A DNA stretch of 64,000 bases from Styela clava (lineage: Eukaryota): the NCBI RefSeq assembly GCF_964204865.1, contig NC_135252.1:14074001-14138000 (forward strand), in the 5' to 3' direction. Numbering within the stretch: position 1 is the stretch's first letter; each line of letters opens with the position of its first letter. The translations under genes were made by a program, and so were the position numbers. Under the pieces are notes generated by a model that was not told where the DNA came from, searched no databases, and saw only the letters and a list, made by a program, of their open reading frames with translations. Of this stretch, positions 26,553 to 50,437 are shown one piece after another.

Positions 26553-28851
26553 ATGATATTCCTTCCAAAATAAAGCTGCTAATCATATTTGATGCTGATA
26601 AAGAAAGATTTCACTGACATGTGCAATCAACCGTATTTAGACACAACTTTGGAGTAGGCAATTTCTGACTATTTACTCCAAAGGGATTTATATCAAAATT
26701 TTAGTAAATTTGTCATGTGATTTTTTTATTATATATGGGGTAAAAATATTGTAGATGTTCAGGATTGCTTTAAGTTTAAACGGTGCTGTATGTAAGAAAT
26801 GTAGTTAGTTGGAAACACTTTTCTGATCTGGAATTCTGTCGAACCAAGTTTTTTTTTTTATCTTCGAATGGGTTTGTAGATTTCTCCTCATATTTGAAAA
26901 TATTTTACTTTACTAAAATAGTATAGGCTTCAAAGACTTGAAATGAAAAGTACTGGTTCCCAACTCATTTTTGATAAATCTCTCTCTGCTTATTTTGGAT
27001 CTTTTTATTCCTCCCACGTATAAACTCCGTTTCCGTTATTTGTTCAATCTTTAATAGATCCTTGGGTATTGCTACGCACAATTCACTCTGCACCAAACTC
27101 GTATTTCATTAATAACTCACTTGGAGGAAAAGAGTCTGATGTCAGAATTTAAAAAAATGACATAAAAAAAAAATTGAGGCATTCACCAAAAAAAGAAACA
27201 AAATGGTGACGATTTGAAGTTTGTGTCTGAACAGATTCGCTTAAAATGACCAGCCCTAACCACGATAACATTGATTTTTTAATATACATCTTTGCAATAT
27301 ATCCAGCCTTTTTTTACCCATTTCACCAAGAAGTTTTGATAAAACAGCTAGGTTTCTAAGAAATACAAAACAAATAGTTTCAAAGACTGATAGAATATTT
27401 TGAAACGTTTTTGAATGCTGCTTAAGAATGTTGTAGTCGCTCGTATAGTAATTATCGTCCTTTATTTTTTTTTATCTTATCCCATTCAAACACAGAATTA
27501 TTACAGATACTTTGATTTTCCAACATGATAGTTCAAAACCAAGCATTCAATTTAAATTATCTTATCTGTTCAAAATACTGAACAATTTGGCATTTACTCT
27601 GTTTGTTAAACAAAAATCACTGTGGTCTCCTAGTGGGTATTCTTTCAAAATGAGACTAAAATTTAGTGACAATAGTAACCTATATCTAATTAGATTTTGA
27701 AATTTCTTCAAATCCATAGGTAAATAGAATTCATTAGGGTATATATATGTCTGTTAATTTACCATATCTTAGTTCCATAACGCGTACTTTAAAATCAACT
27801 TTTATTCCCAAAAATTGATTATTGATTGAAAACCCAATCTTGAGTGATTTCTTGACAATCTGCCTCCTGGTCCCATCAAATGCTGTATTTTTCGTCATTG
27901 ATATTAATTTTAAATAAATAATTGTGTGTCGTGTATGAATAAAATTCCAGTCTAAGCGATTTCTTGACAATGCGGCTCATAGTCCATAAAATATTGTATT
28001 TTTCGCCATTGATATGACCAAGAAATTAATTTTAAATAAATAATTAATTGTGTAGTCACGTCCACGTTGATGTAAATGCAGTCTCTCTTATCTCAGGCCA
28101 TAACCATGATGTTGTTTCTAAAAGAAGTTAGGTGACACATTTAACAACCTGTGGCTACTCATGGTTTCGTTATGAGATTCATTGTTAATTGCAACATGCC
28201 TGTCCTTATTATTATAGATCCTATTGTACGCTTGCGGAATATGGTGTGCTATTTTGATATAGGGAAAAGCGGAAATAAATTTTCTTGAATAAATGTCAGT
28301 CAAATTTTGTTGTGAGCATGATAAGATGAGCATGATGCCTATGCGTCTTTAATTATGATTTGTTGGGCCTTGTTTGAGTCGAGATACAGAAATATGTGAA
28401 AACTGTCGTCTTGAGAGCCCTGTTAATGGAACCAGGGAAGAGTACCGCACTTTAACCACTGCAATTCTACTAGACTCTGCTGTGTGGCGCAACATGCTAA
28501 TCGTTATGACAAGAGGCTATAGTTTGTCATGATGATTAAGCTTTCCTATTAGTTTCCTCTCTCCCGTGATAAATATGTAAATCCTATTTCTTGCTACTTG
28601 ACTGGAGTTTGCTATTGCGTTGGGTAGTCGTTCTCTGTAATAGTATACAGAAGGCATATTAAGATTATTTCGCCATGGTGATGCCAATTACAGACCACAG
28701 AGGTTATTCGCCGTTTATCATCATCTTTTGGTATGGACTATCCTATAGTACTAAATTATTTACCAACACTTGAGGCTACATGTGCGTGGAACAGGGATGG
28801 CTAATCTTTTTTGAACAATTTTGTTTTGAAAAAGAAGACTGGCTCCTAGAT

Positions 28852-33800: not shown

Positions 33801-36800
33801 TTAATGTGAATACCTATTTGTGAACTACCAAACTGTGACAATATTTATTGAGCATAATGATTACGATACTCGAATTGAGAAACATTTACAGCATAAAAAT
33901 TGACTGAAATCTTTTGTTTCCCCCATATTATACAACCAAGGCTGGGTTGTAAAATACTCCGACTCCATTTCCAACCCGAAAGAAAAAATGTTGATAATGA
34001 AAGCTTCGGCATATGCAAGCCTTCTTCATAGACCGGTAAATTATTTTTTTTTAAGTTTTAGTATCAAGTTTTACCTTATCTCATCAACATTGAAAGTCTG
34101 CAATTCAGAGATATTCAGAATTTCGATTCTGAATTCGGGTTTGAAACTTTGCAAATTCGAATCCGACTCTGACTTCAGTGAAAATATGCTAGACACTCCT
34201 GTTAAGACTCCCGAATATATAGCTCTAGTACCAACTTATTAAGTTTTGCGAAAGGTATCATGACCAATAAATACACTATAGATTCTTCAATCGTGCTGAT
34301 TTCGCAATGATTTTTATTGAATCTATAACCGTATACTCAATCATACCATTGATTCTTTTATTATGGTTGACATCAACTGAACTTGAATCGAATTGTTTTC
34401 TGGCAGATGGCATTGGAACTCGCAATTGTTCTTTTGTAATAGGCTGTATTGTTTTGATGTTACTGATGATGTCAGTTAGCTTGTGAACTTTTAGATTTTC
34501 TTTTGATGTGGTAGAATCTTGAGAAAGGCTCATTTCTGTAAAAACAAAAAGATCACATTCTGAAATACTACTTTTTAATATAAAATATGTTCCAAAATGG
34601 ATCCTATTCAATAAGAAAATTTATATTGTATCATGTTATGATACATTCACGGAGATATGGCTGTAGTACAGAAAAGTTAAGACAGGCATTATTCTTATTG
34701 TTAGTTATGGTTGCCAAAGTTATACAAGTCTGGGCTTGGTTTAAACATATGACATCAGTTTGAATTGAATCACATAAATTATATGCAATATTATAAATTC
34801 TTCCGAAAATCAGTAATTTAATAAATTTTTAAAATGAAAATAAATTTCTTGTGAGAGTAATAAATCTAATTTCAAGTCTTGTCAGGTTTTCTCTGACTAT
34901 ATCATGATATGATTTTCAATATGTTTGGTTTGGATTGTCTGTTGAAAAAAGTTTGTGCTGACAAAGAAATCTAAGCTTGGAAAATCAAAGAAATTAAAAT
35001 AGAATTTGGCTATCTAACCTTGGAAAAATCATAAATTGCTGATACGCATGAACAAGAATCTTACAAATGGGGTGAAGGCTTCAAATATTGCATGATATAA
35101 CGACAATGCAACAAATAAAATACCAAAACAATGTCCGTCATTATTTTTTACCAATTACAATCCATGATAAGCTAGTTTTAATTCAAATATTATTTTAATT
35201 AAATCACCTCTTGAATTTAGTGATTCATCAGAATTTTTGCTAATTTCTGCCAAAGCTCCAAATTGTCCAGATGTTATCCCTTGATACATTGGTTCTGACA
35301 AAATATTATGTAAAAATTTGAGAAAACATCAAATACTACTCACACACATGTACACTTTTACAAGACAACCCTTAGCTTTATAATAACAACCATTTACTAA
35401 AGGTGTCTGTCAGTAATTCTTCAATGAAAATAATATTATTGTTCCATCTGATTTATCCACTCAGATATTTTCCAAGTTATAATATATTTCCTATAGAATC
35501 TTAATATGTTGATGTTGCAGATATTCGAATATTCATCATCTCACTCGAAGGATGGGGATATGCAATACCAAACCGAAAGGATTATGGTCATTTCCAACAT
35601 ACCGTAATAGCTTCTAACAAAGTCAGTGACTGATTGTACCAAGCCTTTTTCATAGAAAAAACACCTCATAAAAAGATATAAGCAAATTTGAGCAATACCA
35701 AAATAAAAATACAACACAAACAGCGAATAGTACCAATCAAGGTTTGAAAGTTAAGATGAAAGTTCATGTGAGAGTCACTCAACCTCACACATAGTTTAAT
35801 ATTAATTAAGTCCATGCTTCCGAAAACAAAAAATCCCATACGGGACATGGACTGGTAATCTGACGAGGGCCGTAGTTCGCCATATGATAAAGCCGTCGTA
35901 TAGACTTTCATTTTCCTCCCCGGGATAAATATGTAAATCCTATCCTCACCTTCGATATTTTTCACTTTTTGCTTTCGATTTAGTACATTTTTATTTGGAA
36001 TTACTTTGAATTGGTCAGAGGACACGGGACTCATTGCTCCTCCAATATTGTTAACTGAAAACCTAGAATGAAAAAATTACCTATTCTTATGAGCAAGCTA
36101 TTTATGCTGAGAAAATATCTTTACGACATATAATATTGCACAAAGTATCATCACCCGATATACCAAGTGCTGAGGTGTACCCTTTGAAACCATAAAATTT
36201 ATCATAATCAGTAATCAGTTTATTTTTTCGCATAGGCCTGCTGAAAATATACATTTCAAAGTGAAGGGAGATGCGATAAACTAGTACTAGTCATACTCAC
36301 TTCCAAACATGGAGTGCTCTGTATTTAGCTTTTACACCAGCAAAACTGGGTCCACTTTTAAGGGTATAACAAACCTAAATGAAGAATTAAAAAAATTTGG
36401 ATAAAAACAATGTTGAACTTGAGCCCATATAACACAACAAATATATTATGAAAAATAGTTTCAAGAAATTATTCTTAAAAAGAATGTGAGAGAAACATGA
36501 AACCATTTGAAAAATGCTGGACTTTCCAACTTCATAGATCATTTGATAATCAAAAAAAAGCCTATGAAACGTATCTGAATACTTATTAGGATTTTCATGT
36601 TCAGTATTGGAAGAGAAAAAGTGATAATACAATCTAATAACATGACGAACTACGACCTCTCGTCCGGTTACGAGTCAATGGAGATTTACAATAGATTTAC
36701 AATTATTTTATTCAGATATATGGACCTAATGGTTGAGGAAGCTGCAATCGACTAGCTGTTACATGAAGAAACACAATGTGGTGGAGTCCAGCAATCGCAC

Positions 36801-39800
36801 ATCATGCAGTGGTGTGCCAAACTTTTCCGCTGCCCGGGGCGAGAATATGATGCCCGGGGCGAGTTTCTGATAATGCTGCCCCTTATACCTTCAAAAATAT
36901 TTGGGGAGTAAACAAATTATAGATGTTGTTAATTGTTATACGTGAAAATAAATAAATTGAAGGTCGAGTAAGGGGTGAAATGTTTGTAATATTTTTATTC
37001 AAACCATCGAACTAAGCAACAAACTCACACCTATAACGTGCTGCCCAGGGCGGCTGACCTTTCAGCTCCCCTCTAGGCAGGCCACTGACCACAGGATTTG
37101 GACCTGTTATCCCCTTGCAAGGTAAACAAAAGTGCAATGACAAACGTGTTCCTAACGCTTATCACAATTTTCCTGCATACCTTTTCACCTATGCTCAATA
37201 CTTTTGTTAAGTCATTAGTAAGAGGTTCATTCATTCCAATCTGATATGCTTCAATATTGAAATACACATTTTCGGTAAATAAATCATTGTATCTATCTTT
37301 CTGAATAAATCCAAAATCTGGCCTCAAATTTTTGTGAACGTATCCAATATCTATGGAAAATAAGAAAGAATTTTTTTTAAACCCGAATAAAAAAAGATTT
37401 TCATATTATTAGAAGCCGTAAAAAACATACATACCGAGTTTCCCCGAAAATAAGACCTACCCTTTAAATAAGACCTAGTCAATAACGCGGAATTTTTTTT
37501 TGACCTGGTCGATAGCAAGAAATCTCTCCCATATGTTTTAAATGATTAATCTAAAACGTGTGAGATAGGAAAACGTGTCATTTAAGTAAATGGATATCGA
37601 ATTTCATATTTTGTATATTTGAAAATCTCGTAATTCTCTTCTTCGTAATTTTGTTTTTGATGAATAAAATATAAGAAATCCCCCGAAAATAAGCCCTAGT
37701 GTTATTTTTCGGAAGAATATTGGAATAAGACCCAGTCTTATTTTCAGGCAAACGCGGTAGCAATATCGAGTATAACAACAAAAAATTTGAATCATAGTTT
37801 ATTGTCATTGCAATAAATTGTTAGCTCGCAAAAGCAGAGAATCGTGTATTTACATAATGAAAAGGAAATTGATCAACAATGACTATTAGAGCATGAATGA
37901 TTAACAATATTTTAGAATGAAGTATAGTATATTTATGACTATGGAACTGCATACTTAGTTTAAAATAAATAAATCTAAGAAAAATTTGGAAATACAGGAA
38001 TGTTAAGATAAATACTTATTTAATCATTTGTCAATATTTTAAAGATTATCAGAACGTAAATAAAGACGAAAATAAAATTTTCCAAATAAGAACTACGATA
38101 TAACAATTTTTTCTTCATAGCGCAAATGTAAAATATTGAAATTATTTAATTATAAATTGATGTTCAAATCAATTTGATTTGTTTTAGACAACCCTGCATA
38201 TACCAATGCATACCATAACTAGATTTAGGTGATGGAGGTGGACTCGGAAACACCATCGCATTCGTTACAGTCTTAGCTGGTTGTTTGATAGGAGGATTCC
38301 TTTGAGTCACACTAGCCCAGCTGAAACAAGAATAAGATTTGTTACGAGTGCAATAAACTATATTTGCTAGATTGATGAAGATAATGCTCTAGATCTAATT
38401 GTATAACATTGTGGGCATAGGAAGAAAAACTAATATAAAAAATTTTGAAATTGTTTTAGAATTGAGGACATTCCAACTCAGACAAAATATTTTTCTGATT
38501 GGATTACAGTGGAGAAAAGTTTTGGTAAATAAGAGAGTTATATAAAATTGGTGAGATTTATAATAATAGCAATTACCAACATAAACATTTTACAACTTCA
38601 GTTTTATAGTTATTATTTTCATTTATTCAATTTAGAGAACGCATCCAAAAACAAGATATGAGTTTTGACAGATACTGCATTTCATTCATATTCTAAAGCT
38701 AATTCTGAAAATCAGATGTCTGAAATTATTGGACACTGGGTGTAGCTATTGTTCTTGTTGTCGTTCTGAAAAGTTCTTTTCCTTCAGTACTTGAAGTTGG
38801 CAGTAGTTGCCAGAAGGCTATTTATGCTTCTGCTTTTATAAAAAGAAACACTGGTTCGATATTTTATCCTAATGTTTAAACATATTACACCACTGCATGG
38901 CTTTCTAACTGCCATTCTTCGACTTCCTTGTTGTGAATAGCTTTGGTGGTGACAGCCAGAATTGAATCATAAGCATTTTAATGATCAGATAACAGATATC
39001 TGTGTAGGTAGGTCACACTAATGTAGTACGGTTAGTCATATGACGACCGTTTCCATATATTTGAGCATTGCTGTCCTATTGGACACGTAGTGGACATAAC
39101 AATCGTTTCAAAATTTTGTTGTTATTGTTATTTTCATTATTATTTGTCTCCATCATTTTTAAAAAAATCGCTTTTCTCTTCGAATACTGGACCAATTGCT
39201 TTGAAATTTTCAGTGGTTGAAGATAAAATTTTTCCCCAGAAGGCTATTACTTTTATTCATTTTAAATATTTCTGTTAGCTCTATGAGATTTGTTTTTGTT
39301 TGCTATGACGTCATTAAACGTTCTGCGGACATCGGACGCCATTTTGTGTCCTACTGTACTGCTTCACTTGGTGTGAGTATATTTGTAGACTGTGATCTGG
39401 CGGTACGGTAAACCGTACCCTACTGCGAACAGACGTGTCCATATATTTGGGTGTAGCTCTCTTGTTTCTAATCTAATACAGAAGATTGGAATATAAGTAT
39501 TTACCCTGATAAAGTAGATGTTGAAGATTGAGCAGGAAATTTAGATGCCAATGATGGAAATTCATTAAAAGATTCTTCTGGTATTTGTTTCACACTGTCA
39601 AAAAAGAGTTTTTAAATAATAGGATTCAAGTTTATTCCAAATTTCAGACAACTTTGAAGTCGGAAATTATATTATTTATTTATTCACTATGATTGCTTAT
39701 TTTATGACATGCCTAACAAGTTTTACAACTGATGTAAAATAAATCTGAAATTAATTCTATTTTAAATTTTTATGTAATTTTAGGAATAATTTATTTTGAA

Positions 39801-42800
39801 AATTATCATTTTTAGCGATTAACTAAAAATGGCTTCAGTTAATTTGAAAAAGAAAATCAGACCTCCTGAAGTATGCGCACCAAGATGACGAACAACCTGA
39901 ACTCAGGTTGTGTACCAGGTTAGGGTTCAGGTTATGCGACATTTTGGTGCGCAAACTTCAGGAGTACCAAAAAATCAATTGAGATCGCTCAGTAATTAAA
40001 GTGTTAGACTTGGCATCGAAGATTTAAAAACCTATACCCACCACCTCACCCAGGGTGTAATAATTAGGTAGGCGATGACGAAAAGTAAAAATTCGAACTC
40101 TAAAATTCTAATACATATCATTGGCTGCTCGTAAAGAGCCTCGTTTAGACCAAGCAATATTTAAAAAAACGAAATGTCATTTCACTTTTCTGTATTTTCA
40201 TATTCAAACTCATTGAAGATACAGAGACAGAAAATGATAAAATTTAGAATATATTAGATGCATTCAAAAATATTACTTCTGGGTTTTCCCATCCCCATAC
40301 TGAAAAAATCAAAAATCATACTTACACAGAAGCATCTGCTAAATTATCTTCATATTCTACATCATCATCATCAATTTTTTCTACCTCAAGAGCTCTCCAT
40401 TTGGACTTAATATTTGGATTAGTAACTGGCATTGCATAAGCACTAACCCTGTAAACAATTAATTTGAATAAAGGTAAAGAATACAGGTACTTCAATCTGA
40501 ATCGCTACTGCTAATTTTGGTTGATCTTTCTGTAATTCACGACACAATTATGTAGGTAAATATGTATTAACCAAATACAAGGAGAAACAATGACAACTAA
40601 ACATCTTATTCGACCTAGGGAAAAGCATAGATACCATGTTCGGGTGGCTGTAATCTTTGCAACAGATGGAAGGAGCATAAATTCAAATCCTTGGGTAAAA
40701 AACGCTCTGCCGTTTATATAATATTTTACCATAAAAAAAACAATGATTGTCAAGACTAGAGGAATAAGTCAGTTTTCAGATGCCTCAGTTGCAAGTCTAG
40801 ATGAAATATTGACTATGCATGATTACCTATCGAAATTTTTAAAATGCTTTCTTATATCATCATTAGGTTCGAGACCACAAGCTTCCAAATCGAAGAAAAC
40901 ATTTTCTTCAAATCTCGAAGGTTTGTCATCTCTTTCTATAAATGAGTATTCCTTCTCTATACGTCGAGCTATAAATCCTGAAATGTGAATTGAGTAGAAA
41001 AGTTGAGTAGAAAAGCTTTTAATTTTACAATGCTGTGCTTCTGAGGTCTCACCTAATACTTTCAAGCTATATGAGCAACAAAGTAGACATACTGGTATGG
41101 GTGTACTGAAGTTAAAAAAAACAGATTTCAGCGAAACGAATCTAATTTTAATACCCAAAATGAGGTAATGGACACATGACATGTTTATCACATAATAAGC
41201 CGCGGATCAAACTTGGAGAGTATTATTTGCCTGCTGAGATTATTTAACTTTCTCCAACTGTACATCATGACGCAATTTTCCAAAGCACAGTACAATAATT
41301 TCCCAAATAGATTATAACAAAAAGAAAAGTTTGTGAAGCACTGACCTAACTCATGTACAAATCAATATTCATCCATAACATTTCTTATCCATGAGAATTC
41401 ATTGAAATAACAAACAAATGAAGTCTTGAAATTTAGCTGCGCTCATTATCAAAAGATTAAGACTCAAATAATGCTCACCAAAGATGAAAAACTTGATTGT
41501 AATTGCTTTTTCAAAATGAATTCTCAGGACTTTCAAAAATGATTTAACATTTTGTGATTTAACATTCTAGAAAGTTACCTGTAATATGTATTCCACCAGC
41601 AGGATCAGGTTCAACTTTTAATATCTTTTTTTGTTTATCTATAAAATTTACAAATTATTCATATTAATTCATTAAACATACATATTAAGCTAAGTGCTGG
41701 AAGCATGATCATTATAGCTTTACAAATTAAGATATGATTAAAATAGAATTTATCATTGGTGGAAGAATGGTAAGGTGACGTATGGAAATGGATTTTGACT
41801 GATTAATCAGTAAAAAGTTTTATATTGCTCTCGAGATATCTTTGAGTCATTTTTAGAAAATGATTGTTGAATTCACTCATGTAACAACTAACTGCTAATA
41901 CATTTATAGAGTGCATTGAAAATGGTGTTATGGATAGTTACCACCAAAACAATGTTCAAATATATGAATTTAAAGGTCAAAGGCTTAAAATCGGTGATTT
42001 CTCATTCAACCACTGAATTTATTCACATGCCTACCAGCCAGGCCTCAGCTGACCACTAAGTTTGCTGAGAAGAGTGAAAGAATAATCTGGCAGAATGCCA
42101 AATAGATGTGCAATATAAGACAAACCGGTAATTTTTGGTGTGATATTTTAGGCCCTATCAGACCAGAAGAAAATTTGAGAGTGAGACTAAATGGAAGTAT
42201 AAGGCACCTAGTAATTTTCGTTGTAATCTTCTAGTACTTAAAGTTTTATATTATTTGGTCCATTACTTGTACAATTTATTCACAACAACGAACACCTCAA
42301 CAGGTACAACAACGATGAATATGTGCTTAGCTGGATATGCCTGTAATAAGAAAAGTAAAATGAACTTCACCCTTTTTTCTTTCATACATAAATGGAACAC
42401 TAATTCTTTGCTCTGCTTTCTTTTCCAATTTACTTTTCTGTCCACTATGCTTCTGCAAATTATGACCCTGACAATATAAAGAAAACATAATAACATAGAA
42501 ACGCTTTTAAACTACTGTAATAAACTAATTTAGCAAAATAGGAAATTACCTGTAAATCTATTTCATCTCTATAGACAGGAATGCGATCTGATTCCATGCA
42601 TTCAGGATGTTCACATGGAAAATGATTTTCACGCTGATGTTCAAAAAGTGAGTTCTTGTCTCTAAATAAAAATATTGAGCATTAGCAGGAAAGTTGATGC
42701 CATCCTCGCTAGAAGCAGATCTCGCATATAAGCCAACCTCTTGAAAAAGGCTCTAAAACGGTAAATTTATACAAATTTGCATATGTGACATGTGTGTGAC

Positions 42801-45800
42801 AACCAATCACAGACTGTTATCACTGTCGTAGCATACAGAGTGCTGCTTCGATCTTATCATGATTCGAGTTGAATCTGTTTAAATTACCGGCAAGTTACAT
42901 AGTATAATGTCATTTCGTTTGAGTGTGATCAAAGTTATGCGTGTATAAGCCTAGCATTTTATAGAAGCCTAAATAAAAGACATAACATTGCGTAATCATG
43001 TGAAACTAGAGTATCATTGACTTCTGTACACAACACAAGGGGTTTCCTAACCGAGTATATTGTATCTACAGATGTGGAACTATTCTTTCACCTGTATTAT
43101 AATAATTTAAACAATGAAATACGCTAGACATAATGTCATGCCTGAACTATCATAAAATGTGAGAGTGTGTTCAGAAGCATAAAATTGAGCTGATAATAAA
43201 TAGAGCATACAAAAAGCAGAACACAATTAAGTATGTGTGGAACAACACACCTTCAAAAGTAAATAATATCTAATATAATGACAGGCAGCCTATACTGACA
43301 TAAATGTATTACAGGAATGGTTGAATGATATATATTGCTATTCGAGGTTACTTTCACTTTAGGCATATTTACGTATAGAATGACACTAAACATGGATAAA
43401 CTCCTTTTAATAAATATTTGCATCATAGAAAATCAATTATGAAAGCTTTTGCTGTAACATCAAGACAAATCATTTTCACAAATCTCTAAAAAATTGAATA
43501 TGTATAATTTAAAATTATTTTTTAGTTAAGTGAACATGCACCACTTCTTAAAAGTCTTTTTATTTAAACTTTGTTTGTTTTTAACCTTACTTTTGTTTGC
43601 TTTCCTGGTTCTATAATCTGTTTTTATTTGTTTTATTTCTATCAAATATTTTATCACCTATGCTGATTACGGAGTCGAAATGAACTTATATTTATTTGTA
43701 GACAACTGAGAACACACTTTTAAGACCTTGCCTTAAAAAGTCCAGTATTATATTCAGGACATGCATTTTTATAATAGAAAATCTATACAGTGTTGACTTA
43801 CGCATAAAACTCATAATTCTTATGTTCTTCATTAACTTCATCACATATAATACAGGAACAATGATGAAGTCGAAGATGACGTAATAATTCATCATTATCC
43901 AAATAACGATAATCACAAAATCTAAAACGAAAGACATATAGTTTATAGATTTTACCATAGTTTTTTAGCTGTCCAGATACATAACAGCTTCAGGAAGCAT
44001 ACTCACAAGTGACACCATTTACATCTATATAGTGTTGCATTGGAGGGAATTTAGCATATTTGACTCATAAATTTGTGGTGAAAAATTTTTTTGGCTCTGA
44101 GAGATCAAAAATACAACTCTGACTCCAATATAAACATGCCGACACTACAGCCTAATAATTACATTTTACTGGAATAAAAACAGGATATACATGCTTACCT
44201 ACACAATGGATGGCCACCCCTTGCTGACCCAGTTTCATCACCATCTTCAATATGTTTCTTTAATTCCGACTTGGAATATGTTTTTCGCTCTTCAGTAAAT
44301 ATCTGAAAACGAATGTAAAAATCTGCTTTTTTCCTATAGTTTCTCAACGTCAAAACATTTTGTATAGCTCATTTCCTTGTTTGGTACCCAGATTCATTAT
44401 GGTACTTAATGGGAGAGCTATAAAACGAATTTATCCAATATCTTAAAATAAATTATGCAAACAATTCTAGTAATTTCAAAAAATCAGCTTCTTCCATTTT
44501 CAATGGCTGCTTTTGCAGAGCCTCGTACAGGGTGAAAGTCATATCAAAGAAATTATGTTTGAATAAAAATGCATTTTAGTAAGAAAAAACTTTTAAAATC
44601 AATATCACTCGCCGTTTCATTTGCTAATTAAAAAAAAACACTTTAACATACCTTACATTGTCTTACACATATTTCACAATAATACAGTTGATGTTTATCA
44701 CGAGCATGAGCTTCTAATCCAGGAAAATTATCGAAAATGGCATTCGGACATTTATTGCAGACATGTCGCAAAAGAGCACTGTAGATTATAACAGAATATA
44801 AATAGCATAGGAAAATATAATTCGGTTAATTTAGCAATGTTTCGTAGGCACTGAATAGTTTCAAAGAAAATGTGCTACTGCTGCATATTATGGTATATAC
44901 AGACCTGACTGTTTGAAAAAAGACAAACAAGAATACCGGAAATTATAAACCAAATAAATTAACATTCAAGTATGCTTATTCCTATAATTATTGTCACATG
45001 TAAGATGTAACCTCTGTTATACAGTCTAAAGCAGGGATGGACAAACTACGGCCAAACAAAGCATTTTGCGTAGCACCCTGTTCTTGGGAGAAATTAGTGA
45101 AGATTTCTTAGAACTACATACAAAATTTAATTTTATTGCTTTGCTTCATCTTCAATTTAACAATACCATAGCGAGAGTCACAGTCAATTTTTCAATGCGA
45201 GTCTTTGCAAAAAAAAAAAGATTTTCAAATAATTCAAACCTCTTTTGTTCACAGACTTTGATGTTTTCAAATGCAATCCCATATTTTTTATCCTTGATAT
45301 AATCGTCAACCTTATGCTCATTTAATGGAAGCAAATTCTTAGAAAATACAACCTAAAAAAATTTTTTTGAGAGAAACTTTGATAGGACAGAAAAACATTG
45401 ATCTAAATAGTCGAGAATTCTGTAACAATATATTATAGTATCAGATTCATTCAGAAATGGCCAAAACTTAATCATTTTCCCTAACATACACAATGAGTAA
45501 AATCTAAACAGATCATTTTAACAGAGAAATTTGAAGAAACAAAATTGGGTGCTCCCGAAGTATGCGAATCAAGATGGCGGACATCGGAACGTAACATGGA
45601 TAACAAGTTAGGGTTAGGCGATAATTTTTTTCCAATTTTCCTCATTTTAGTTCTATTATCAGTTGGAAGACTAGCCAAGAGCCTCCCGTAGTATTTAAAG
45701 CTAAAATTATGGCCTAACCTTAACCTAGTACACATATTACATTCCGATGTCCGCCATCTTGGTTCGCATACTTCGGGAGCCCCCAAAATTGAATTTGAAA

Positions 45801-47292
45801 TCAAATGATTTCTATAATGAAAAATTAAAATCAAAATTTTTCAAAATTTTTCGTTTCTATAAATTCCATGGTAATCAGAAATGATAAAATTAGAGCTAAA
45901 TTAAAATTGGAGTCAACTGTGTCGAAAACTATTGAGTGACTCAAATATCGCTGACTTCTATCTTTAGTCAGTTTCTATGACTTACCAGGTCCAATGTTTG
46001 TCTGCATACTGGGCAGTTCTTATCTTCACATAACACCCGTAATTTAGTACTGCATCTGTAAAAAGGAAAAGCTTTAGAAACTTGACAAATTGATCATTAA
46101 AATCTTTAAAATAACAGCATTTTGAGAAATAATAAAAAATGCTCTCTAAATAAGTGAATGTGGCAATATAAATAAAATGCAGGGCAACAATTCGAAGTTT
46201 GGCATGCTTCCATTGAAATCGAATCGTATTTTAAACTCTCCGAAGTCAAAGTAATTTCCAAAAGATGGAAGTCAGGATTTCAGACTTTGAATGGTGATAA
46301 TCAAAGTCTCAAATTCAAAATTTTGTGAACGAACCGAAAAAAAAGCAGTCTCCATTCTTATAAGTCTATCAAAGATGCGTGTTCAAAATTTTATTTTTAC
46401 TAGAGTTCGGTGCAGAAGCTTGAGTTAAAATTTCCATCAATCTTAATTTTTTGGACTCAGAGCAGGGAGTGGGAATCGATTGTGAATTTCCATGACTACA
46501 CAACCCTGACAAAATGTTTTGACAAAAATTAAATTATAAGAACTGAGCTAACCTGTAACAAATAGGATGTCGACATTCACCAATTGCAAATATTTCAATA
46601 GGATCGGAACAAACTGTACATGGATCATCCTCTGTAAAATAAAATTGCAATATTTTCATACGATAATTGATAGTTTGTAAGAAAATAATTCCCAATTTAG
46701 TATAATACAAGCAAATTGCGCACTTGAGCATTTATCATCTTCAAAATTTTTATCATCAAAGATAAATCGATTAATTTAAAAAAATTATTTTGAAATTGAA
46801 AAATATTAATTAGATAATTTTTTAGCAATGATTCACTAGAAACTGAGTATGAAATCCATCTTTAAAATATTTGTAGAGAAATGAAAAAAATTGGTCCTCA
46901 AATTATCCGACAAAATAAAATTTAAATTACATCTTATCATTTGCAGAAGAATCGAAGAAATCTTATTCCACGAAATTTGTAAAAATATATTGATTACAGA
47001 ATTAAGCAAAATCGAATCACAAAATATAAAACACTAATTTTAATTTGGTTTAACCTAAAATAAAAAATTAATCTGATTGATCTATTCAAAGACTTAAAAT
47101 AATAATGGTAATATTATTGTATGAACAATCGCTTGAAAACAATATCTGAATCTAAGAATATTCTGAGAAGGAAAGCTTCAGAATGTTTGAAGTGAGCGTT
47201 ACTGTAATAATAATCAAAAGAAATTAAAAAATGTAATTTCACACACTTGCACTATCCAAATTAACTGATGATTTTTTTCCTTTGGAATTCAT
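30886..47292 (-). CDS. ZNF598: ZNF598/Hel2-like RING and zinc-finger E3 ubiquitin ligase with two cold-shock-like domains and a divergent C-terminus (about 922 aa, 25 coding exons; true start may be further upstream)
   Basis: Minus-strand exons 47292-47247, 46631-46553, 46055-45986, 45352-45240, 44778-44652, 44302-44199, 43921-43802, 42661-42550, 42467-42371, 41638-41579, 40977-40827, 40448-40326, 39594-39505, 38320-38214, 37350-37181, 36374-36301, 36062-35950, 35294-35208, 34535-34347, 33649-33503, 33403-33336, 32807-32669, 32231-32090, 31477-31319, 30967-30886. All are GT-AG and phase-compatible (2769 nt). RING: CTVCSDPIEIFAIGECRHPICYRCSTKLRVLCEDKNCPVC. Also IFTEERKTYS and GHPLCRFCDYRYLDNDELLRHLR (human, from memory: GHPLCKFCDERYLDNDELLKHLR) and an EFPSL motif. 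It may be a paralog rather than the ortholog; C-terminal exons rest on phase fit alone. Confidence 0.88.
35780..35947 (+). mobile_element. SINE 3' fragment abutting a ZNF598-like splice donor
   Basis: catggactggtaa..cgccatatgataaagcc..cccgggataaatatgtaaatcctatcctc ends at the donor GT (35949-35948, minus strand). Confidence 0.65.
36645..36800 (-). mobile_element. SINE fragment (reverse orientation) cut off next to a MITE
   Basis: ggagtccagcaatc and upstream sequence are the near reverse complement of the SINE core at about 4130-4260. Confidence 0.5.
36807..37087. mobile_element. hAT-like MITE
   Basis: TIR cagtggtgtgcc / ggcaggccactg (10/12) with tgccc(g/a)ggg subterminal repeats; no clear TSD. 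Confidence 0.55.
37434..37757. mobile_element. Tc1/mariner (pogo/Tc2-like) MITE
   Basis: TA TSD on both sides; imperfect TIR ccgagtttccccgaaaataagac / gtcttattttcaggcaaacgcgg. Confidence 0.75.
39077..39466. mobile_element. Helentron/DINE-like non-autonomous element
   Basis: Subterminal inverted repeat tggacacgt (39080) / acgtgtcca (39433); hairpin ggtacggt-aa-accgtacc (39402-39419); terminal tccatatat..gctctcttgtt also seen at about 3393-3429. Confidence 0.45.
39859..39968. mobile_element. Short palindromic MITE, same family as 45547-45784
   Basis: Inverted arms ctcctgaagtatgcgcaccaaga / ttttggtgcgcaaacttcaggag around ggttagggtt. Confidence 0.6.
40375..40977 (-). other. Cold-shock/OB-fold-like domain 1 of the ZNF598-like protein
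   Basis: Exons 40977-40827 and 40448 onward encode GFIARRIEKEYSFIERDDKPSRFEENVFFDLEA..FDRVSAYA..KSKWRALEVEK. Its first 33 aa align without gaps to domain 2. Confidence 0.65.
45547..45784. mobile_element. Palindromic MITE with 6-bp TSD
   Basis: Arms gggtgctcccgaagtatgcgaatcaagatggcggacatcggaa / ttccgatgtccgccatcttggttcgcatacttcgggagccccc; aaaatt on both flanks; internal ttagggttagg / cctaaccttaa. Confidence 0.85.
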
Positions 47293-47544
47293 GACACCTT
47301 TTATGTTGTGCTCGTCACTAATTTTTTTAAAAACATCAGAATCTTCCTTTTTCTCATCTTCCTGGATGCTATAAATTTCCTCATCACATAAAAGAAACAA
47401 ATCTGGATATTTTGAAATCAATTTTTCCAGTCCAACTTTCTGAAAAAGTTATTTAAGTTAATTAAAATACTGTTTACTCAAACAAATAAATTAAATCAAC
47501 ATATCGCACTGCATATACCAGTGTTGAGTAAAAGTTCTTCAACC

Positions 47545-47720
47545 CCACAGGGTGAGGTCAAGCCACAGTTTATTCAAGTCAAGTCAATCATCGACTCAAA
47601 TTTCACACAGCGGTGTCCGACATGGACTGGTAACTGGAGAAGAGGATGTGGTTCCCCATATGATTAAGCCATCTCATCAGCTTATATCTCCTTGGGATAA
47701 ATATGTAAATCCCATCCCAC
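47545..47720 (+). mobile_element. SINE 3' fragment
   Basis: ccgacatggactggtaact..ccatatgattaagcc..gggataaatatgtaaatcccatccc matches the other SINE copies. Confidence 0.6.
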
Positions 47721-49439
47721 TAGGGTGGTGTAGCCAGTCTGCGGACAATTTCATTCAAACTGCTATAAAACATAAACCAATATTTCTAACCCGTTAATTT
47801 TTTTACCGTAGGTGCATTGGCATTTATTCTACACGTTAAACCTCGAATTAACTTTCTACAACCAGGGGTTGAAGCTATACAAACCAGCAAAGTACGACAC
47901 TCTGAAGACGTATTTGCGACCGAACGACCAGTGTGCAACCACGGATTTCAAGCCTTGAACATCGTTTCTGCTGCGCCGAAACTAGGGCATACGTAGCCAT
48001 GCGTAAAAAAATAGGCTTCTAATTGCATTTCTGACCATCATATATTTTAAGAACACGATTATTTCGAACAAAACTCGTCAAATTATAAACAAAGCACCGC
48101 ATCATAGCAATCAAACAGACAAAAACACGGCGCAAACTGGTAGACAAAGCTATTATCGACGTATTGGAAATGCGCACCCCTCTATTCTTCCTCTTTTAAA
48201 TGTAGAAACGCGAAACTTTAAAGATGGTTAAAAGAAACACAAGTTTCATCTCTTTATCTCTCATATTTGTATGGATTTTCAAGCTTTTTTAAAGGAACAA
48301 TGGGTAGTTGGCGACATGGAAAAATTGTCCGTTTTTTTTTTTCGGTCGGGTTTTCGGTTGTAAGTTTTTTGTTTGTGGCTGCATTTTAATGTAATTTCGC
48401 AGGACTACGAGGGATAAGTGGATAACACGTGAGAAATATCGTCGCGGTTCGTTAATTTTTTCATCATTAATTTAATCGATGAAGTTGATGGTCGCAAATA
48501 GGTCGTGGCCGCAAAGTGGGTAGGTATAAGTATAAGTTTATTTCGACTCCATAATCGGCAAAACAATAAGATAAATGATAAAAATAAATAAATAAAAACT
48601 GATTATGAAATCAGGAGAGCGAACAAAACCTTAGATAAGGTTTAAAACGTACAGAATGTATATAAGATGGAAGGTTTTGCCAAGAAGATGTGGTACGTGT
48701 TCACTCACCTAAAATAATTGAAATATTTCACACACGCTCACACGCACCCACACACACAACCATATAGAAGTTATTAAGTAAAGGGAACATGAAAAATTAC
48801 ATACTGGTAGTTAATAAAAAATAAATAAATAAAAATTACTTGCCACACCATATTTATAAATTTATGATGATTGCCACTGCCAAATTGATCAGTTTATTAA
48901 ATGGGAGTGAACAGTAACGATAAACTTTTTTAAAAAAAATTATATAATTAAGCCACCCTATAGCATCAGCGATTAGTACGAGTCCAAGTTATTTTGATGA
49001 GTCTAGTCACTTCAATTCCACAATTTGCATCAAAAATATCTGAATACATATAACAGTATAAGCTACAATAAATCAGTAATTTTAAATATTTACCTTTACA
49101 TATTTACGTTCTTTTTGACTTAATTCAGCTAAATGACCCTTGAAAGAATTCATGCAAAGATGTCCATTTTTGTTAAGCAGGACTTTCTTGAAATAATCAA
49201 TAATATTCTTTTCCATGGTGGTCAACAGAATAACTGAGATAATTTGAGGCTACACTGTTTAACAATGATAAAAAAATTAATTAATTTCAATGATCTGACT
49301 AAATTTTAGGTAAATTACATTGTGTACATCAAAGAAAGCTTTTTTTGTCGATTGCAATTTGGCGGAACAGACATAGACTACATAAAAAAACATCTCGCTA
49401 TAAAGACAATTGCGCAGGGGAATCCCCAGTGGGAAAAAT

Positions 49440-50437
49440 ATCATTTCGACACGAAACCACAGTAGTTTGGTCAGATGGATGTTTGATAGATTTTTGTTAG
49501 AGCCGGTGTAGAAATTTATATGGTTCTATCAAATGTGAAATTGCAAAGTCTAGTCTCGAGTATTGGCATATCGTGCTAAGCACCTGATATATCACCGCGC
49601 ATATTCGCATGCTAGAATCTCGACGGATTGTTTACAAGAGTCTGTGGCATCTTTCTCCATCATCCCAGTCCAGTAATCGGAGACAAATAACTATTGTTGT
49701 AGCGGCCATGATTGTAAACAGTGACCGCTCCTTTTGTTTTACCTAGTAACTAAACTGGCAACGGTAACTTTGGGTGTTGAACCTTAACCATTTTGACATT
49801 GGCGCGATCTCTTTCGGCGTGAGCCACTTGGAGGTAGGACGTGTAAATTTGTATCCTAACCAATCAAAGGGGATTTGGTATTATTAATTAGGCTTAGTTT
49901 TGATTTACATCTAATAATTCTGTTTTTCTTGTTTCGTATAGTATAATTGGTCCCTCCTGTGTAATAGCACTGTATATTACCGGATTTCTGTTTGACAACT
50001 ATTTCACCAACTTTTGACTCAACAATAAACATCTTTGGACAATCATTTCGAGACTTTGGAAGAAACTCAGTCAGAACTGCGTCATCAAAAATAAAGTGCC
50101 TGTACAATCTATTTGTTCCAATCGCTCTAACGAGCACGTCGTATGGTGGCTGAGCTGTTATAATCGTCATGTATCATTTCATACCATATCCTTATTATTA
50201 TCTCATGCTTTAAACCGTAAATATATACTACTAAGTTCAAACATCATTTAAAGGCAAGACCAATTTCGTAATTTCTGGACTGCGTCCTTTTTGTGTCATG
50301 GTGAAGTTCGTGAAAATTTCTGATTCTGAGTAAGATGTATCGTATTTAAAACGGGATAAATAAAAAAAAATACTGATTTGTATGGCGATAAACGCTAATG
50401 ATATTTTCCAATCCTGATTGACTGACCAATTTGACAT
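49440..50437 (-). pseudogene. Possible decayed intronless ORF (type II membrane protein-like), unidentified
   Basis: ORFs 50437-50237 (N-terminal hydrophobic ISLAFIAIQISIFFYL) and 50170-49856 are in the same frame, separated by stops; protein-like fragments continue in shifted frames to about 49440. No family recognised. Confidence 0.25.

Follow-up and report, generated by a model that had tools for sequence, protein, structure and literature searches.

Does the ZNF598-type ubiquitin ligase encoded at this ascidian locus carry RNA-binding domains on the same chain, and what could such domains do for an enzyme whose family, ZNF598/Hel2, senses the geometry of collided ribosomes and not the mRNA? 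The question arose from a preliminary description of the window, i.e., the whole stretch of 64,000 nucleotides of Styela clava contig NC_135252.1 analysed here, which had proposed an intact RING and zinc fingers followed by two cold-shock-like repeats in a lineage-specific ligase.

A single expressed gene on the minus strand

Positions 49216-36297 of the minus strand hold a single expressed gene, modelled with 17 coding exons and approximately 638 codons (Table 1). The reading frame is uninterrupted over all 17 exons, and the splice sites chosen are all AG/GT. As read from the sequence, the product would comprise, in this order, an Egalitarian-type (LOTUS-like) winged helix, a ZNF598-type RING, five C2H2 fingers, a first cold-shock-like barrel, a linker and a second barrel. 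The linker between the barrels is short and retains one [DE]FP[SA]L motif, and the stop codon stands right after the second barrel. The span 36301-41638 given in the preliminary description does contain, on the minus strand, all the features listed for it, but its lower end falls within the last Lys codon (36302-36300), just before the stop.

Table 1. Coding exons of the modelled gene (E1 to E17), with their content and the evidence for each; P0001 is the homolog from Clavelina, P0004 from Phallusia and P0011 from Ciona
Exon	Coordinates	Strand	Content	Evidence
E1	49094..49216	-	ATG at 49216; first half of putative Egalitarian-like winged helix	45% identity to P0011 residues 1-42 (tblastn); GT donor present
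E2	47247..47439	-	winged helix second half (putative), acidic/basic linker; 3' boundary +/- 2 nt	matches P0001 residues 44-71 and P0004 residues 45-69 (tblastn); AG/GT sites, open frame
E3	46553..46631	-	ZNF598-type RING, first half (CTVC...C-R-H-PIC)	Pfam RING_ZNF598 31.4 bits (piece 46537-46731; cut-off 27); 54-68% identity to canonical copy and ascidian homologs
E4	45986..46055	-	RING second half (C-STKLRVLC...CPVC)	Pfam RING_ZNF598 37.5 bits (piece 45971-46093; cut-off 27); own-genome RING_ZNF598 scan match C3:14119962-14120063
E5	45240..45352	-	post-RING segment (VVFSKNLL...)	weak match to RING_ZNF598 profile positions 52-88; tblastn matches to P0001 and P0011; donor picked by phase and length equal to Ciona's
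E6	44652..44778	-	C2H2 finger 1, start of finger 2	tblastn E 2e-8 to P0004; 44-53% identity to homologs and canonical copy; single AG acceptor available
E7	44199..44302	-	finger 2 (FTEERKTYSK...GGHPLC)	identity 62% to P0001, 48% to canonical copy
E8	43802..43921	-	fingers 3-4 (FCDYRYLDNDELLRHL...)	identity 77% to P0001, 74% to canonical copy; weak Pfam zf-C2H2_4 match
E9	42550..42661	-	finger 5 (HFPCEHPEC...)	Pfam zf-C2H2_13 22.7 bits, below cut-off 27; tblastn match to P0004 residues 312-352
E10	42371..42467	-	finger 5 end, basic segment; last exon of ZNF598 core	
E11	41579..41638	-	linker; final nt begins Gly codon opening repeat 1 (phase-1 intron)	
E12	40827..40977	-	CSD-like repeat 1, strands 1-3 (YSFI, NVFFD motifs)	41% identity to P0001 residues 419-459 (tblastn)
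E13	40326..40448	-	repeat 1 strands 4-5 (SKWRALEV), then acidic tract	
E14	39505..39594	-	linker; NEFPSL motif (ZNF598 tail signature) occurs once	aligns with homologs' DSFPSL/DEFPAL/EAFPAL
E15	38214..38320	-	Pro/Ser-rich linker; final nt begins Asp codon before repeat 2 (phase-1 intron)	
E16	37181..37350	-	CSD-like repeat 2, strands 1-3, AYQIGM helical insert (FGFI, NVYFN motifs)	phmmer E 4.8e-12 to P0001
E17	36297..36374	-	repeat 2 strands 4-5 (VCYTL...KAKYRALHVWK); TGA stop 36299-36297	acceptor tttag|GT fits 2-nt overhang of E16 contig piece

In each of four runs (three studies), one contig of 2.2-2.5 kb joins E10 to E16 at the coordinates of Table 1 through six GT..AG joints. These runs carry no RNA record and had been marked 'RNA?' by guess; the absence of introns from their contigs is the one argument for taking them as cDNA. 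The joints 42371>41638 and 41578/9>40976/7 are present in all four runs, as are those of E13, E14 and E15. Since E10 to E16 are joined in single contigs, one mRNA carries the final zinc-finger exon together with both repeats, in agreement with the single transcript for ligase core and repeats proposed at the outset. The contigs reach 1050-1138 nt upstream, where the model has 1041 nt of coding sequence, and continue 333-608 nt past E16. The read-based joints cover E10-E16, while the E1-E9 junctions rest on homology and splice sites; homology and the upstream reach of the contigs together support the predicted placement of E1. The junction of E16 with E17 is a probable assignment, as is the 3' end. 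A possible alternative donor, AA|GTGAGT, was observed at 36301/36300 within E17.

The ZNF598-type core and its relation to the canonical copy

Both RING pieces exceed the cut-off of the Pfam RING_ZNF598 model (PF25447), which the ascidian relatives match at 80-90 bits. All eight Zn ligands are readable in the window sequence together with five C2H2 patterns, C-x2/4-C...H-x4-H, that form an array in E6-E10 directly after the RING, in agreement with the intact RING and zinc fingers first described. This RING region is poorly modelled by AlphaFold in the relatives (pLDDT < 40).

A second, canonical ZNF598, for which a genome search had been suggested, is indeed present: the own-genome scan with RING_ZNF598 revealed another locus, on contig C17, the exons of which are those of canonical ZNF598. 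The finger exons of the window share 36-74% identity with this copy. The canonical gene possesses a 615-aa disordered exon, a conserved C-terminal region and five FP motifs, compared with the single NEFPSL motif in the tail of the window gene; no CSD-like repeat was found in it, and its C-terminal exons give no match to the window at E below 0.7. The window gene is a paralog of ZNF598 and a second member of its family; for almost all the eukaryotes scanned, this family has been reported to be single-copy (PMC3701560).

Like ZNF598/Hel2, the paralog has the family-specific RING with five C2H2 fingers behind it, arranged in the same order, and keeps one [DE]FP[SA]L motif; its similarity to this genome's own canonical copy can be followed exon by exon. 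In contrast to ZNF598/Hel2, it is devoid, within the window, of the long disordered tail with its repeated FP(S/T)LG motifs (pattern [DE][DE]FP[ST]LG) and of the conserved C-terminal region, and it has gained two CSD-like barrels and, at the N-terminus, the predicted Egl-like winged helix. Homologs were found in ascidians only (Ciona, Phallusia and Clavelina), all named 'uncharacterized'; repeat 2 retains 41-48% identity across two ascidian orders, and the NCBI gene models of Ciona and Clavelina show an identical domain order. No paper in the literature searched describes this domain combination. Both observations fit the lineage-specific architecture initially proposed.

Cold-shock-like repeats and the N-terminal domain

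Repeat 1 is formed by the final nucleotide of E11 together with E12 and E13, and repeat 2 by E16 and E17 down to position 36300. Their first halves align without gaps (27% identity and 61% positives over 41 aa, BLASTP E 2e-7), and their ends, NIKSKWRALEV and GVKAKYRALHV, align at E 4e-4, which reproduces the gapless start and the like ends noted previously. An HMM built from eight repeats of ascidian homologs (three species) matched, among the 2961 open-frame pieces of the window, exactly the four repeat exon pieces, with E values of 2e-17 (E16), 2.8e-9 (E12), 0.0028 (E17) and 0.011 (E13), the next match being at 0.73. Both repeats also display the two introns from which an exon-pair duplication had been deduced, one of phase 1 near the start and one immediately ahead of the Val in DR|V or EK|V. 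The first introns, however, are two codons apart, and the second ones, of phase 2 and phase 0, differ by 1 nt; because these positions are near but not identical, the closeness of the introns stands and the duplication of exon pairs is loosely supported. The duplication of the repeats is old, since each window repeat belongs with its counterpart in the homologs, repeat 1 with their repeat-1 type and repeat 2 with their repeat-2 type.

The Pfam CSD model (PF00313, cut-off 27 bits) yields no match on the window exons, and the window is not among the 22 matches of the own-genome scan with this model. An HMM of genuine CSDs reaches E 2.9 or worse on the window repeat pieces, and no homolog attains the Pfam cut-off, the best being P0001 with 22.5 bits summed over its repeats. 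The profile comparison by hhalign aligns the repeat profile with 12 genuine CSDs of this genome at 94.8% (E 5.5e-8, score 41.5); by comparison, 100 column shuffles give a score of 10.4 +/- 2.2, a maximum of 17.4 and at most 4.9%, and the reversed profile scores 10.2. Furthermore, the repeat HMM matches genuine CSD exons in register, with the shared pattern G-x-V ... FGFI ... (D/N)(V/I)(F/Y)F ... G-x-(K/R)-V ... A-x-x-V.

The evidence for the fold consists of models of relatives, built from alignments of 5-6 sequences. The AlphaFold model of Ciona P0011 exhibits five strands in both repeat regions (pLDDT 70-87), and that of Phallusia P0004 the same strand topology in three repeats. In structural alignments, Ciona region 368-453 superposes on Lin28B (Z 8.9) and CspA (Z 8.7, 68/70 residues) and region 519-605 on Bc-Csp (Z 8.2, 65/67 residues), the overall range being Z 8.2-8.9 over 65-75 residues; with Foldseek, the best matches are Drosophila Unr CSDs (E 6e-5, multi-CSD fragments). 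Read across from these relatives, the window repeats are predicted to adopt the five-stranded antiparallel OB barrel characteristic of the CSDs of Unr/CSDE1, Lin28, YBX and bacterial Csp, as anticipated when modelling was suggested. Collectively, profile comparison and the predicted structures of the relatives support the original assignment of the repeats as cold-shock domains, of a divergent kind. Their tandem arrangement is also found in Unr. They depart from known CSDs in scoring under the Pfam cut-off, in the helical insert (10-15 residues) that separates strands 3 and 4 of repeat 2, and in the family-specific SK(W/Y)RA motif of the last strand.

The putative Egalitarian-like winged helix starting at 49216 was absent from the preliminary description. 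The N-terminus of the Ciona relative superposes on the Egl domains of the Egl-BicD-RNA structures, related to LOTUS (OST-HTH) domains, with Z 11.0 and rmsd 2.0 over 69 residues (26% identity). The Pfam WH_Egal model (PF23713, cut-off 27) scores 29.0 bits for Clavelina P0001, 27.6 for Ciona P0005 and 23.7 for Ciona P0011; in the window, the half-domain of E1 reaches 14.6 bits and E2 alone has no match. The N-terminus of the relatives is, as modelled, an Egalitarian-type winged helix. Egl domains are described as non-canonical dsRNA-binding, LOTUS-like wHTH domains (PMC13186709). Unlike Egalitarian, the paralog has one predicted winged-helix copy and not three, with neither an exonuclease-homology module nor a BicD-binding context.

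Possible functions of the paralog

The locus is probably best explained as an expressed ZNF598 paralog whose core is still an E3 ligase and whose tail has been swapped for RNA-binding modules that aim ubiquitination. The RING-finger core would retain ZNF598-type ligase activity, and the RNA-binding modules would stand in for the long disordered, adaptor-binding tail. Single-stranded RNA may be gripped by the two CSDs, through the FGFI and V(Y/F)F faces that they retain, and structured RNA by the Egl-type domain at the N-terminus, and ubiquitination would be steered to ribosomes or mRNP proteins on the bound transcripts; RNA binding, ligase activity and a role in ribosome quality control are all putative. 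Tentatively, the paralog may be an RNA-reading derivative of the collision sensor, in which an Egl-type dsRNA domain and two ssRNA-binding CSDs aim the ZNF598 core at transcript-selective ubiquitination of ribosomes or mRNPs. Its targets could then be, for example, localized maternal mRNAs or viral RNA. No organism is known in which ZNF598 exerts transcript-selective quality or translational control through RNA-reading domains.

In its predicted pairing of a RING with an RNA-binding module on a single chain, the paralog resembles the RNA-binding RING ligases MEX3, Roquin, MKRN, CNOT4 and TRIM25/71, which employ KH, ROQ, CCCH, RRM or NHL modules. We know of no such ligase with CSDs or a ZNF598-type core, and none was found in the literature searched. 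As a conserved and expressed paralog, the gene may represent a natural experiment in re-aiming the ZNF598 core by direct RNA contact; it raises the questions of whether this core works when tethered to RNA and of which ligands are bound by divergent CSDs missed by Pfam. Ciona is tractable for CLIP, knockouts and in-situ expression.

With the same architecture, the barrels could instead be non-canonical CSDs that have lost nucleic-acid binding and serve as protein-interaction or scaffold modules, the ligase being recruited by proteins. Some CSDs of Unr/CSDE1 are non-canonical and act as scaffolds, and multi-CSD Unr fragments are the top Foldseek matches. Compared with the RNP1 (G-F/Y-G-F-I) and RNP2 (V-F-V-H) motifs of CSDs, the window repeats read FGFI and VYFN in repeat 2 and YSFI (in place of FGFI) and VFFD in repeat 1; the aromatics are kept and the RNP2 His is lost, its place being taken by Asp in the first repeat and by Asn in the second. 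The strand-1 Trp has no equivalent, and the failure of the Pfam CSD model points in the same direction. Against this, FGFI, N(I/V)(Y/F)F and the basic/aromatic SK(W/Y)RA strand vary little or not at all over eight homologous repeats from three species, a pattern that selection on the canonical binding face would be expected to produce. A purely scaffolding role is conceivable but doubtful.

It is rather unlikely that the paralog is tethered to RNA but operates outside ribosome quality control, its substrates being components of mRNPs or germ plasm that sit on localized or maternal mRNAs. The match of the N-terminal domain to Egl domains, which read localization stem-loops, is in line with such a role, as are the loss of the conserved C-terminal ZNF598 region and of the multiple FP(S/T)LG motifs and the retention of canonical ZNF598 for the housekeeping function. 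The RING and fingers are, however, the ribosome-facing part of ZNF598, and the RING and all five fingers persist at the identity to the canonical copy given above.

Finally, an artefact, in which a neighbouring ZNF598 copy and a CSD gene are read as one or a duplicate is decaying, is highly improbable and already in conflict with the data. Before the contigs were aligned, the fusion was supported by predicted exons, and read support begins at 42467, but single contigs in four runs span the E10-E11-E12 junctions, neither E11 nor E12 has a Met, the frame stays open for 638 codons, the Ciona and Clavelina models share the domain order, and the run-to-run differences are synonymous, conservative or in frame. 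These differences include, in E16, two synonymous changes and one Leu>Phe and, in run X2, an in-frame CAT indel within the poly-Asp tract of E13.

Gene model and transcript evidence

The window, of animal DNA, is AT-rich (~32% GC), intron-rich and N-free, and its stop-to-stop translation reveals a minus-strand series of short coding pieces extending from ~49.2 kb down to 36.3 kb. The full gene model comprises 17 coding exons and 638 codons with zero in-frame stops, and its exons, including the start MEKNIIDYFKKVLL... at 49216, are each matched in the window by the proteins of ascidian relatives (tblastn). The splice sites picked for this model are AG/GT throughout, given the corrected boundaries of exons 5 and 6. 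At the distal end, the acceptor tttag/GTTTGT at 36374 fits the GT overhang, and the coding sequence would then run as ...SIGEK/VCYTLKSGPSFAGVKAKYRALHVWK up to a TGA at 36299-36297. A possible alternative donor, AA/GTGAGT, is located at 36301/36300; if used, it would lead to additional exons. Minus-strand AATAAA signals lie at 36224, 35995 and 35800 and do not settle the 3' end of the gene. The read-based joints cover 36468-42467, while the junction of exons 16 and 17, the 3' end and the junctions upstream of 42467 are modelled. No Rfam match was obtained in 35500-49500. Window exons were queried singly, with the ascidian relatives representing the full-length protein.

The sampled words of 36290-42560 are present at ~12% in nine runs of the same organism, corresponding to the exon share of the region, and at 77-88% in four runs of one further study, the kind of which is not on record. 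Contigs from four low-share runs (three studies) were aligned to 36468-42467. In each of the four, one contig of 2.2-2.5 kb spans seven exon pieces, and all six joints between them are CT..AC on the plus strand, i.e. GT..AG in the gene sense. The label of these runs ('RNA?') had been assigned by guess; since the contigs lack introns, their source can only be cDNA. They reach 1050-1138 nt upstream of 42467, where the model requires 1041 nt of coding sequence, and extend 333-608 nt past 37181, where the exon 16 piece overhangs by two letters, GT. Differences between runs are limited to two synonymous changes, one Leu>Phe and one in-frame CAT indel in a poly-Asp tract. The fusion proposed in the preliminary description is thus borne out at the transcript level, with the last zinc-finger exon and both repeats joined on one mRNA. 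The readings of the locus as a gene-fusion artefact or as a pseudogene were rejected.

Coordinates of the exon pieces, loci and repeat elements (window positions unless a contig is named)
Feature	Coordinates	Strand	Source or remark
Contig-covered exon piece	42467-42371	minus	4 runs
Contig-covered exon piece	41638-41579	minus	4 runs
Contig-covered exon piece	40977-40827	minus	4 runs
Contig-covered exon piece	40448-40326	minus	4 runs
Contig-covered exon piece	39594-39505	minus	4 runs
Contig-covered exon piece	38320-38214	minus	4 runs
Contig-covered exon piece	37350-37181	minus	4 runs
Canonical ZNF598 (L007, L008)	G000:C17:12396700-12404800	minus	PF25447 own-genome scan
Cluster of cold-shock-protein ORFs	G000:C17:379972-436511		PF00313
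Single cold-shock-protein copy	C3:8599212-8599400		PF00313
Single cold-shock-protein copies	C19:10616961, 16942024, 16951405		PF00313
Short dispersed repeat, three copies	35844-35945, 47619-47717, 28507-28587		~75% identical
Intronic inverted repeat	39863-39964		40 nt, 88% complementary, 22-nt loop
Stretch neighbouring the inverted repeat	39068-39467

Of the three copies of the short dispersed repeat, one falls within intron 2 of the gene and another within what is presumed to be its 3' UTR region; this repeat probably accounts for the break points of some cDNA contigs. An inverted repeat is also found in the introns. The word depth in the cDNA contigs is 10^3 to 10^4 for this element and its neighbouring stretch versus ~15-50 for the gene exons, which suggests a transcribed element present in many copies; it may be MITE- or SINE-like, and no Rfam family was found for it.

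Repeats and cold-shock domains

Both repeats reported in the preliminary description are real: their first halves (40975-40826 and 37348-37181) give a gap-free alignment (61% positives, E 2e-7), and their ends pair as NIKSKWRALEV and GVKAKYRALHV. Repeat 1 corresponds to the repeat-1 type of the homologs (C-G-L, SKWRA, insert-free) and repeat 2 to their repeat-2 type (AYQ-GM insert, SKYRA..VWK); this one-to-one correspondence indicates that the two split before these ascidians diverged. A profile built from eight homolog repeats matches four window pieces and no others; neither this profile nor tblastn of the relatives found a third repeat there.

At the sequence level, Pfam assigned no family to the single repeat exons, and its top cold-shock domain (CSD) score among the homologs is 22.5 bits, in Clavelina. 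A scan of the genome with PF00313 returned 22 other places and not the window gene; likewise, an HMM of genuine CSDs run on the window pieces did not pick up the repeats, and the full-length profile, searched against PDB sequences, retrieved RING and zinc-finger chains only, with no CSD chain. In the ESM Atlas, the repeat-2 exon gave a weak CSD lead (0.83) and the repeat-1 exon nothing. When the eight ascidian repeats were compared by hhalign with 12 single-exon, genuine CSDs from this genome, the match scored 94.8% (E 5.5e-8), with a register shared over G-x-V, FGFI, (D/N)(V/I)(F/Y)F and G-x-K-V; none of 100 column shuffles exceeded 4.9%, and the reversed profile scored 0.2%. The repeat profile also recovers the majority of the genuine CSD exons, with the register preserved.

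The AlphaFold model of the Ciona relative (650 aa) gives each repeat five strands (pLDDT 70-87). The top Foldseek matches in the PDB are CSD456, CSD12 and CSD789 of Drosophila Unr (E 6e-5), followed by two unrelated rows and then by human UNR CSDs and CspA. Structural alignment of this model yields Z 8.9 with Lin28B and Z 8.7 with CspA (68/70 residues, rmsd 2.4) for repeat 1, and Z 8.2 with Bc-Csp (65/67 residues) for repeat 2, values within the range attainable by a common fold alone. The Phallusia model displays the five-strand topology three times over, at lower confidence. Because the structural alignment agrees with the profile comparison, the repeats are assigned, on predicted structure and sequence, as divergent CSDs below the Pfam threshold, in line with the cold-shock/OB fold originally anticipated.

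Ascidian relatives and the canonical copy

When 1.84 billion representatives were searched by phmmer, the 56-aa exon of repeat 2 found six matches, one of which (P0002) is an unrelated, spurious repeat protein. The three long matches, from Clavelina lepadiformis (LOC143469989, 1015 aa), Phallusia mammillata (1054 aa) and Ciona intestinalis (LOC104266457, 560 or 650 aa), are all ascidian, represent two orders and are named 'uncharacterized' or carry an automatic label only. In all three, WH_Egal, RING_ZNF598 and fingers precede repeats like those of the window gene, two in Ciona and three in Clavelina and Phallusia, with a [DE]FP[SA]L linker between the first two. A word-index search gave zero matches for the repeat-2 exon, Ciona with fungal and plant Hel2 only for the full-length alignment, and Clavelina and Phallusia only for the Clavelina CSD region. 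Among the matches listed, chiefly the six of the 56-aa query, the architecture appears provisionally restricted to ascidians. Proteins carrying it are already in databases, unnamed; in the paper library searched by full text no description was found (ZNF598 with cold shock domain, Ciona, the Ciona locus, RNA-binding E3 with CSD). According to a 2013 survey, almost every species scanned has one ZNF598 homolog (PMC3701560).

The last ~150 residues of the Clavelina and Phallusia relatives (P0001 and P0004) hold the third CSD-like repeat and a conserved beta-rich C-terminal region (FVQF...P-K-F ... Y-x-L-x-R; low pLDDT, no assigned fold), both missing from the window gene and the Ciona model.

In the Ciona model, N-terminal residues 1-69 align with the Egalitarian domains of the 2026 Egl-BicD-RNA structures (Z 11.0, rmsd 2.0, 26% identity), and WH_Egal exceeds the Pfam cut-off in two homologs. 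In the window, the winged helix is divided over exons 1 and 2, the former scoring 14.6 bits by itself. Egl domains are described in the structure paper as LOTUS-like winged helices acting as non-canonical dsRNA-binding domains (PMC13186709).

Regarding the ZNF598 core, RING_ZNF598 matches the pieces 46537-46731 (31.4 bits) and 45971-46093 (37.5 bits; cut-off 27), and zf-C2H2_13 gives a weaker match at 42463-42681. The RING keeps its full set of eight ligands, and the five fingers are intact as well. Scanning the genome with PF25447 located a second, canonical ZNF598 on contig C17, a possibility raised at the outset. Its exons encode the RING, five fingers and a conserved C-terminal region divided between two exons; a further exon, 615 aa long, contains five [DE][DE]FP[ST]LG motifs. 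The repeat profile has no match at E <=1 in this locus, and the C-terminal exons of the locus have no counterpart in the window. Furthermore, the matches of Phallusia P0004 in this genome are confined to the window locus and the canonical copy. Judged by these comparisons, the window gene is a paralog of ZNF598 and distinct from the canonical copy.

Putative RNA-bound ligase

The architecture is present in the genome, expressed and conserved. Its RING-finger core, with ligands and fingers preserved, is predicted to be an active ZNF598-type E3, in which the disordered, motif-rich tail of canonical ZNF598 would have been exchanged for RNA-binding modules; with these in place of the tail, the ligase would be kept on RNA. 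Its target may still be the collided ribosome, or may be some other mRNP component. All repeats retain the FGFI and (V/I)(Y/F)F faces, which favours ssRNA binding. The RNP2 His and the strand-1 Trp are lost, which would suit the less likely reading of the repeats as scaffold CSDs.

Elsewhere in the genome, contig C17 harbours a ~57 kb cluster of at least eight single-exon, full-length cold-shock-protein ORFs of bacterial-looking type (open frames 79-105 aa, 88-101 bits), and further single copies occur on two other contigs. The cluster is unusual for an animal genome, with lineage expansion or transfer as candidate origins.
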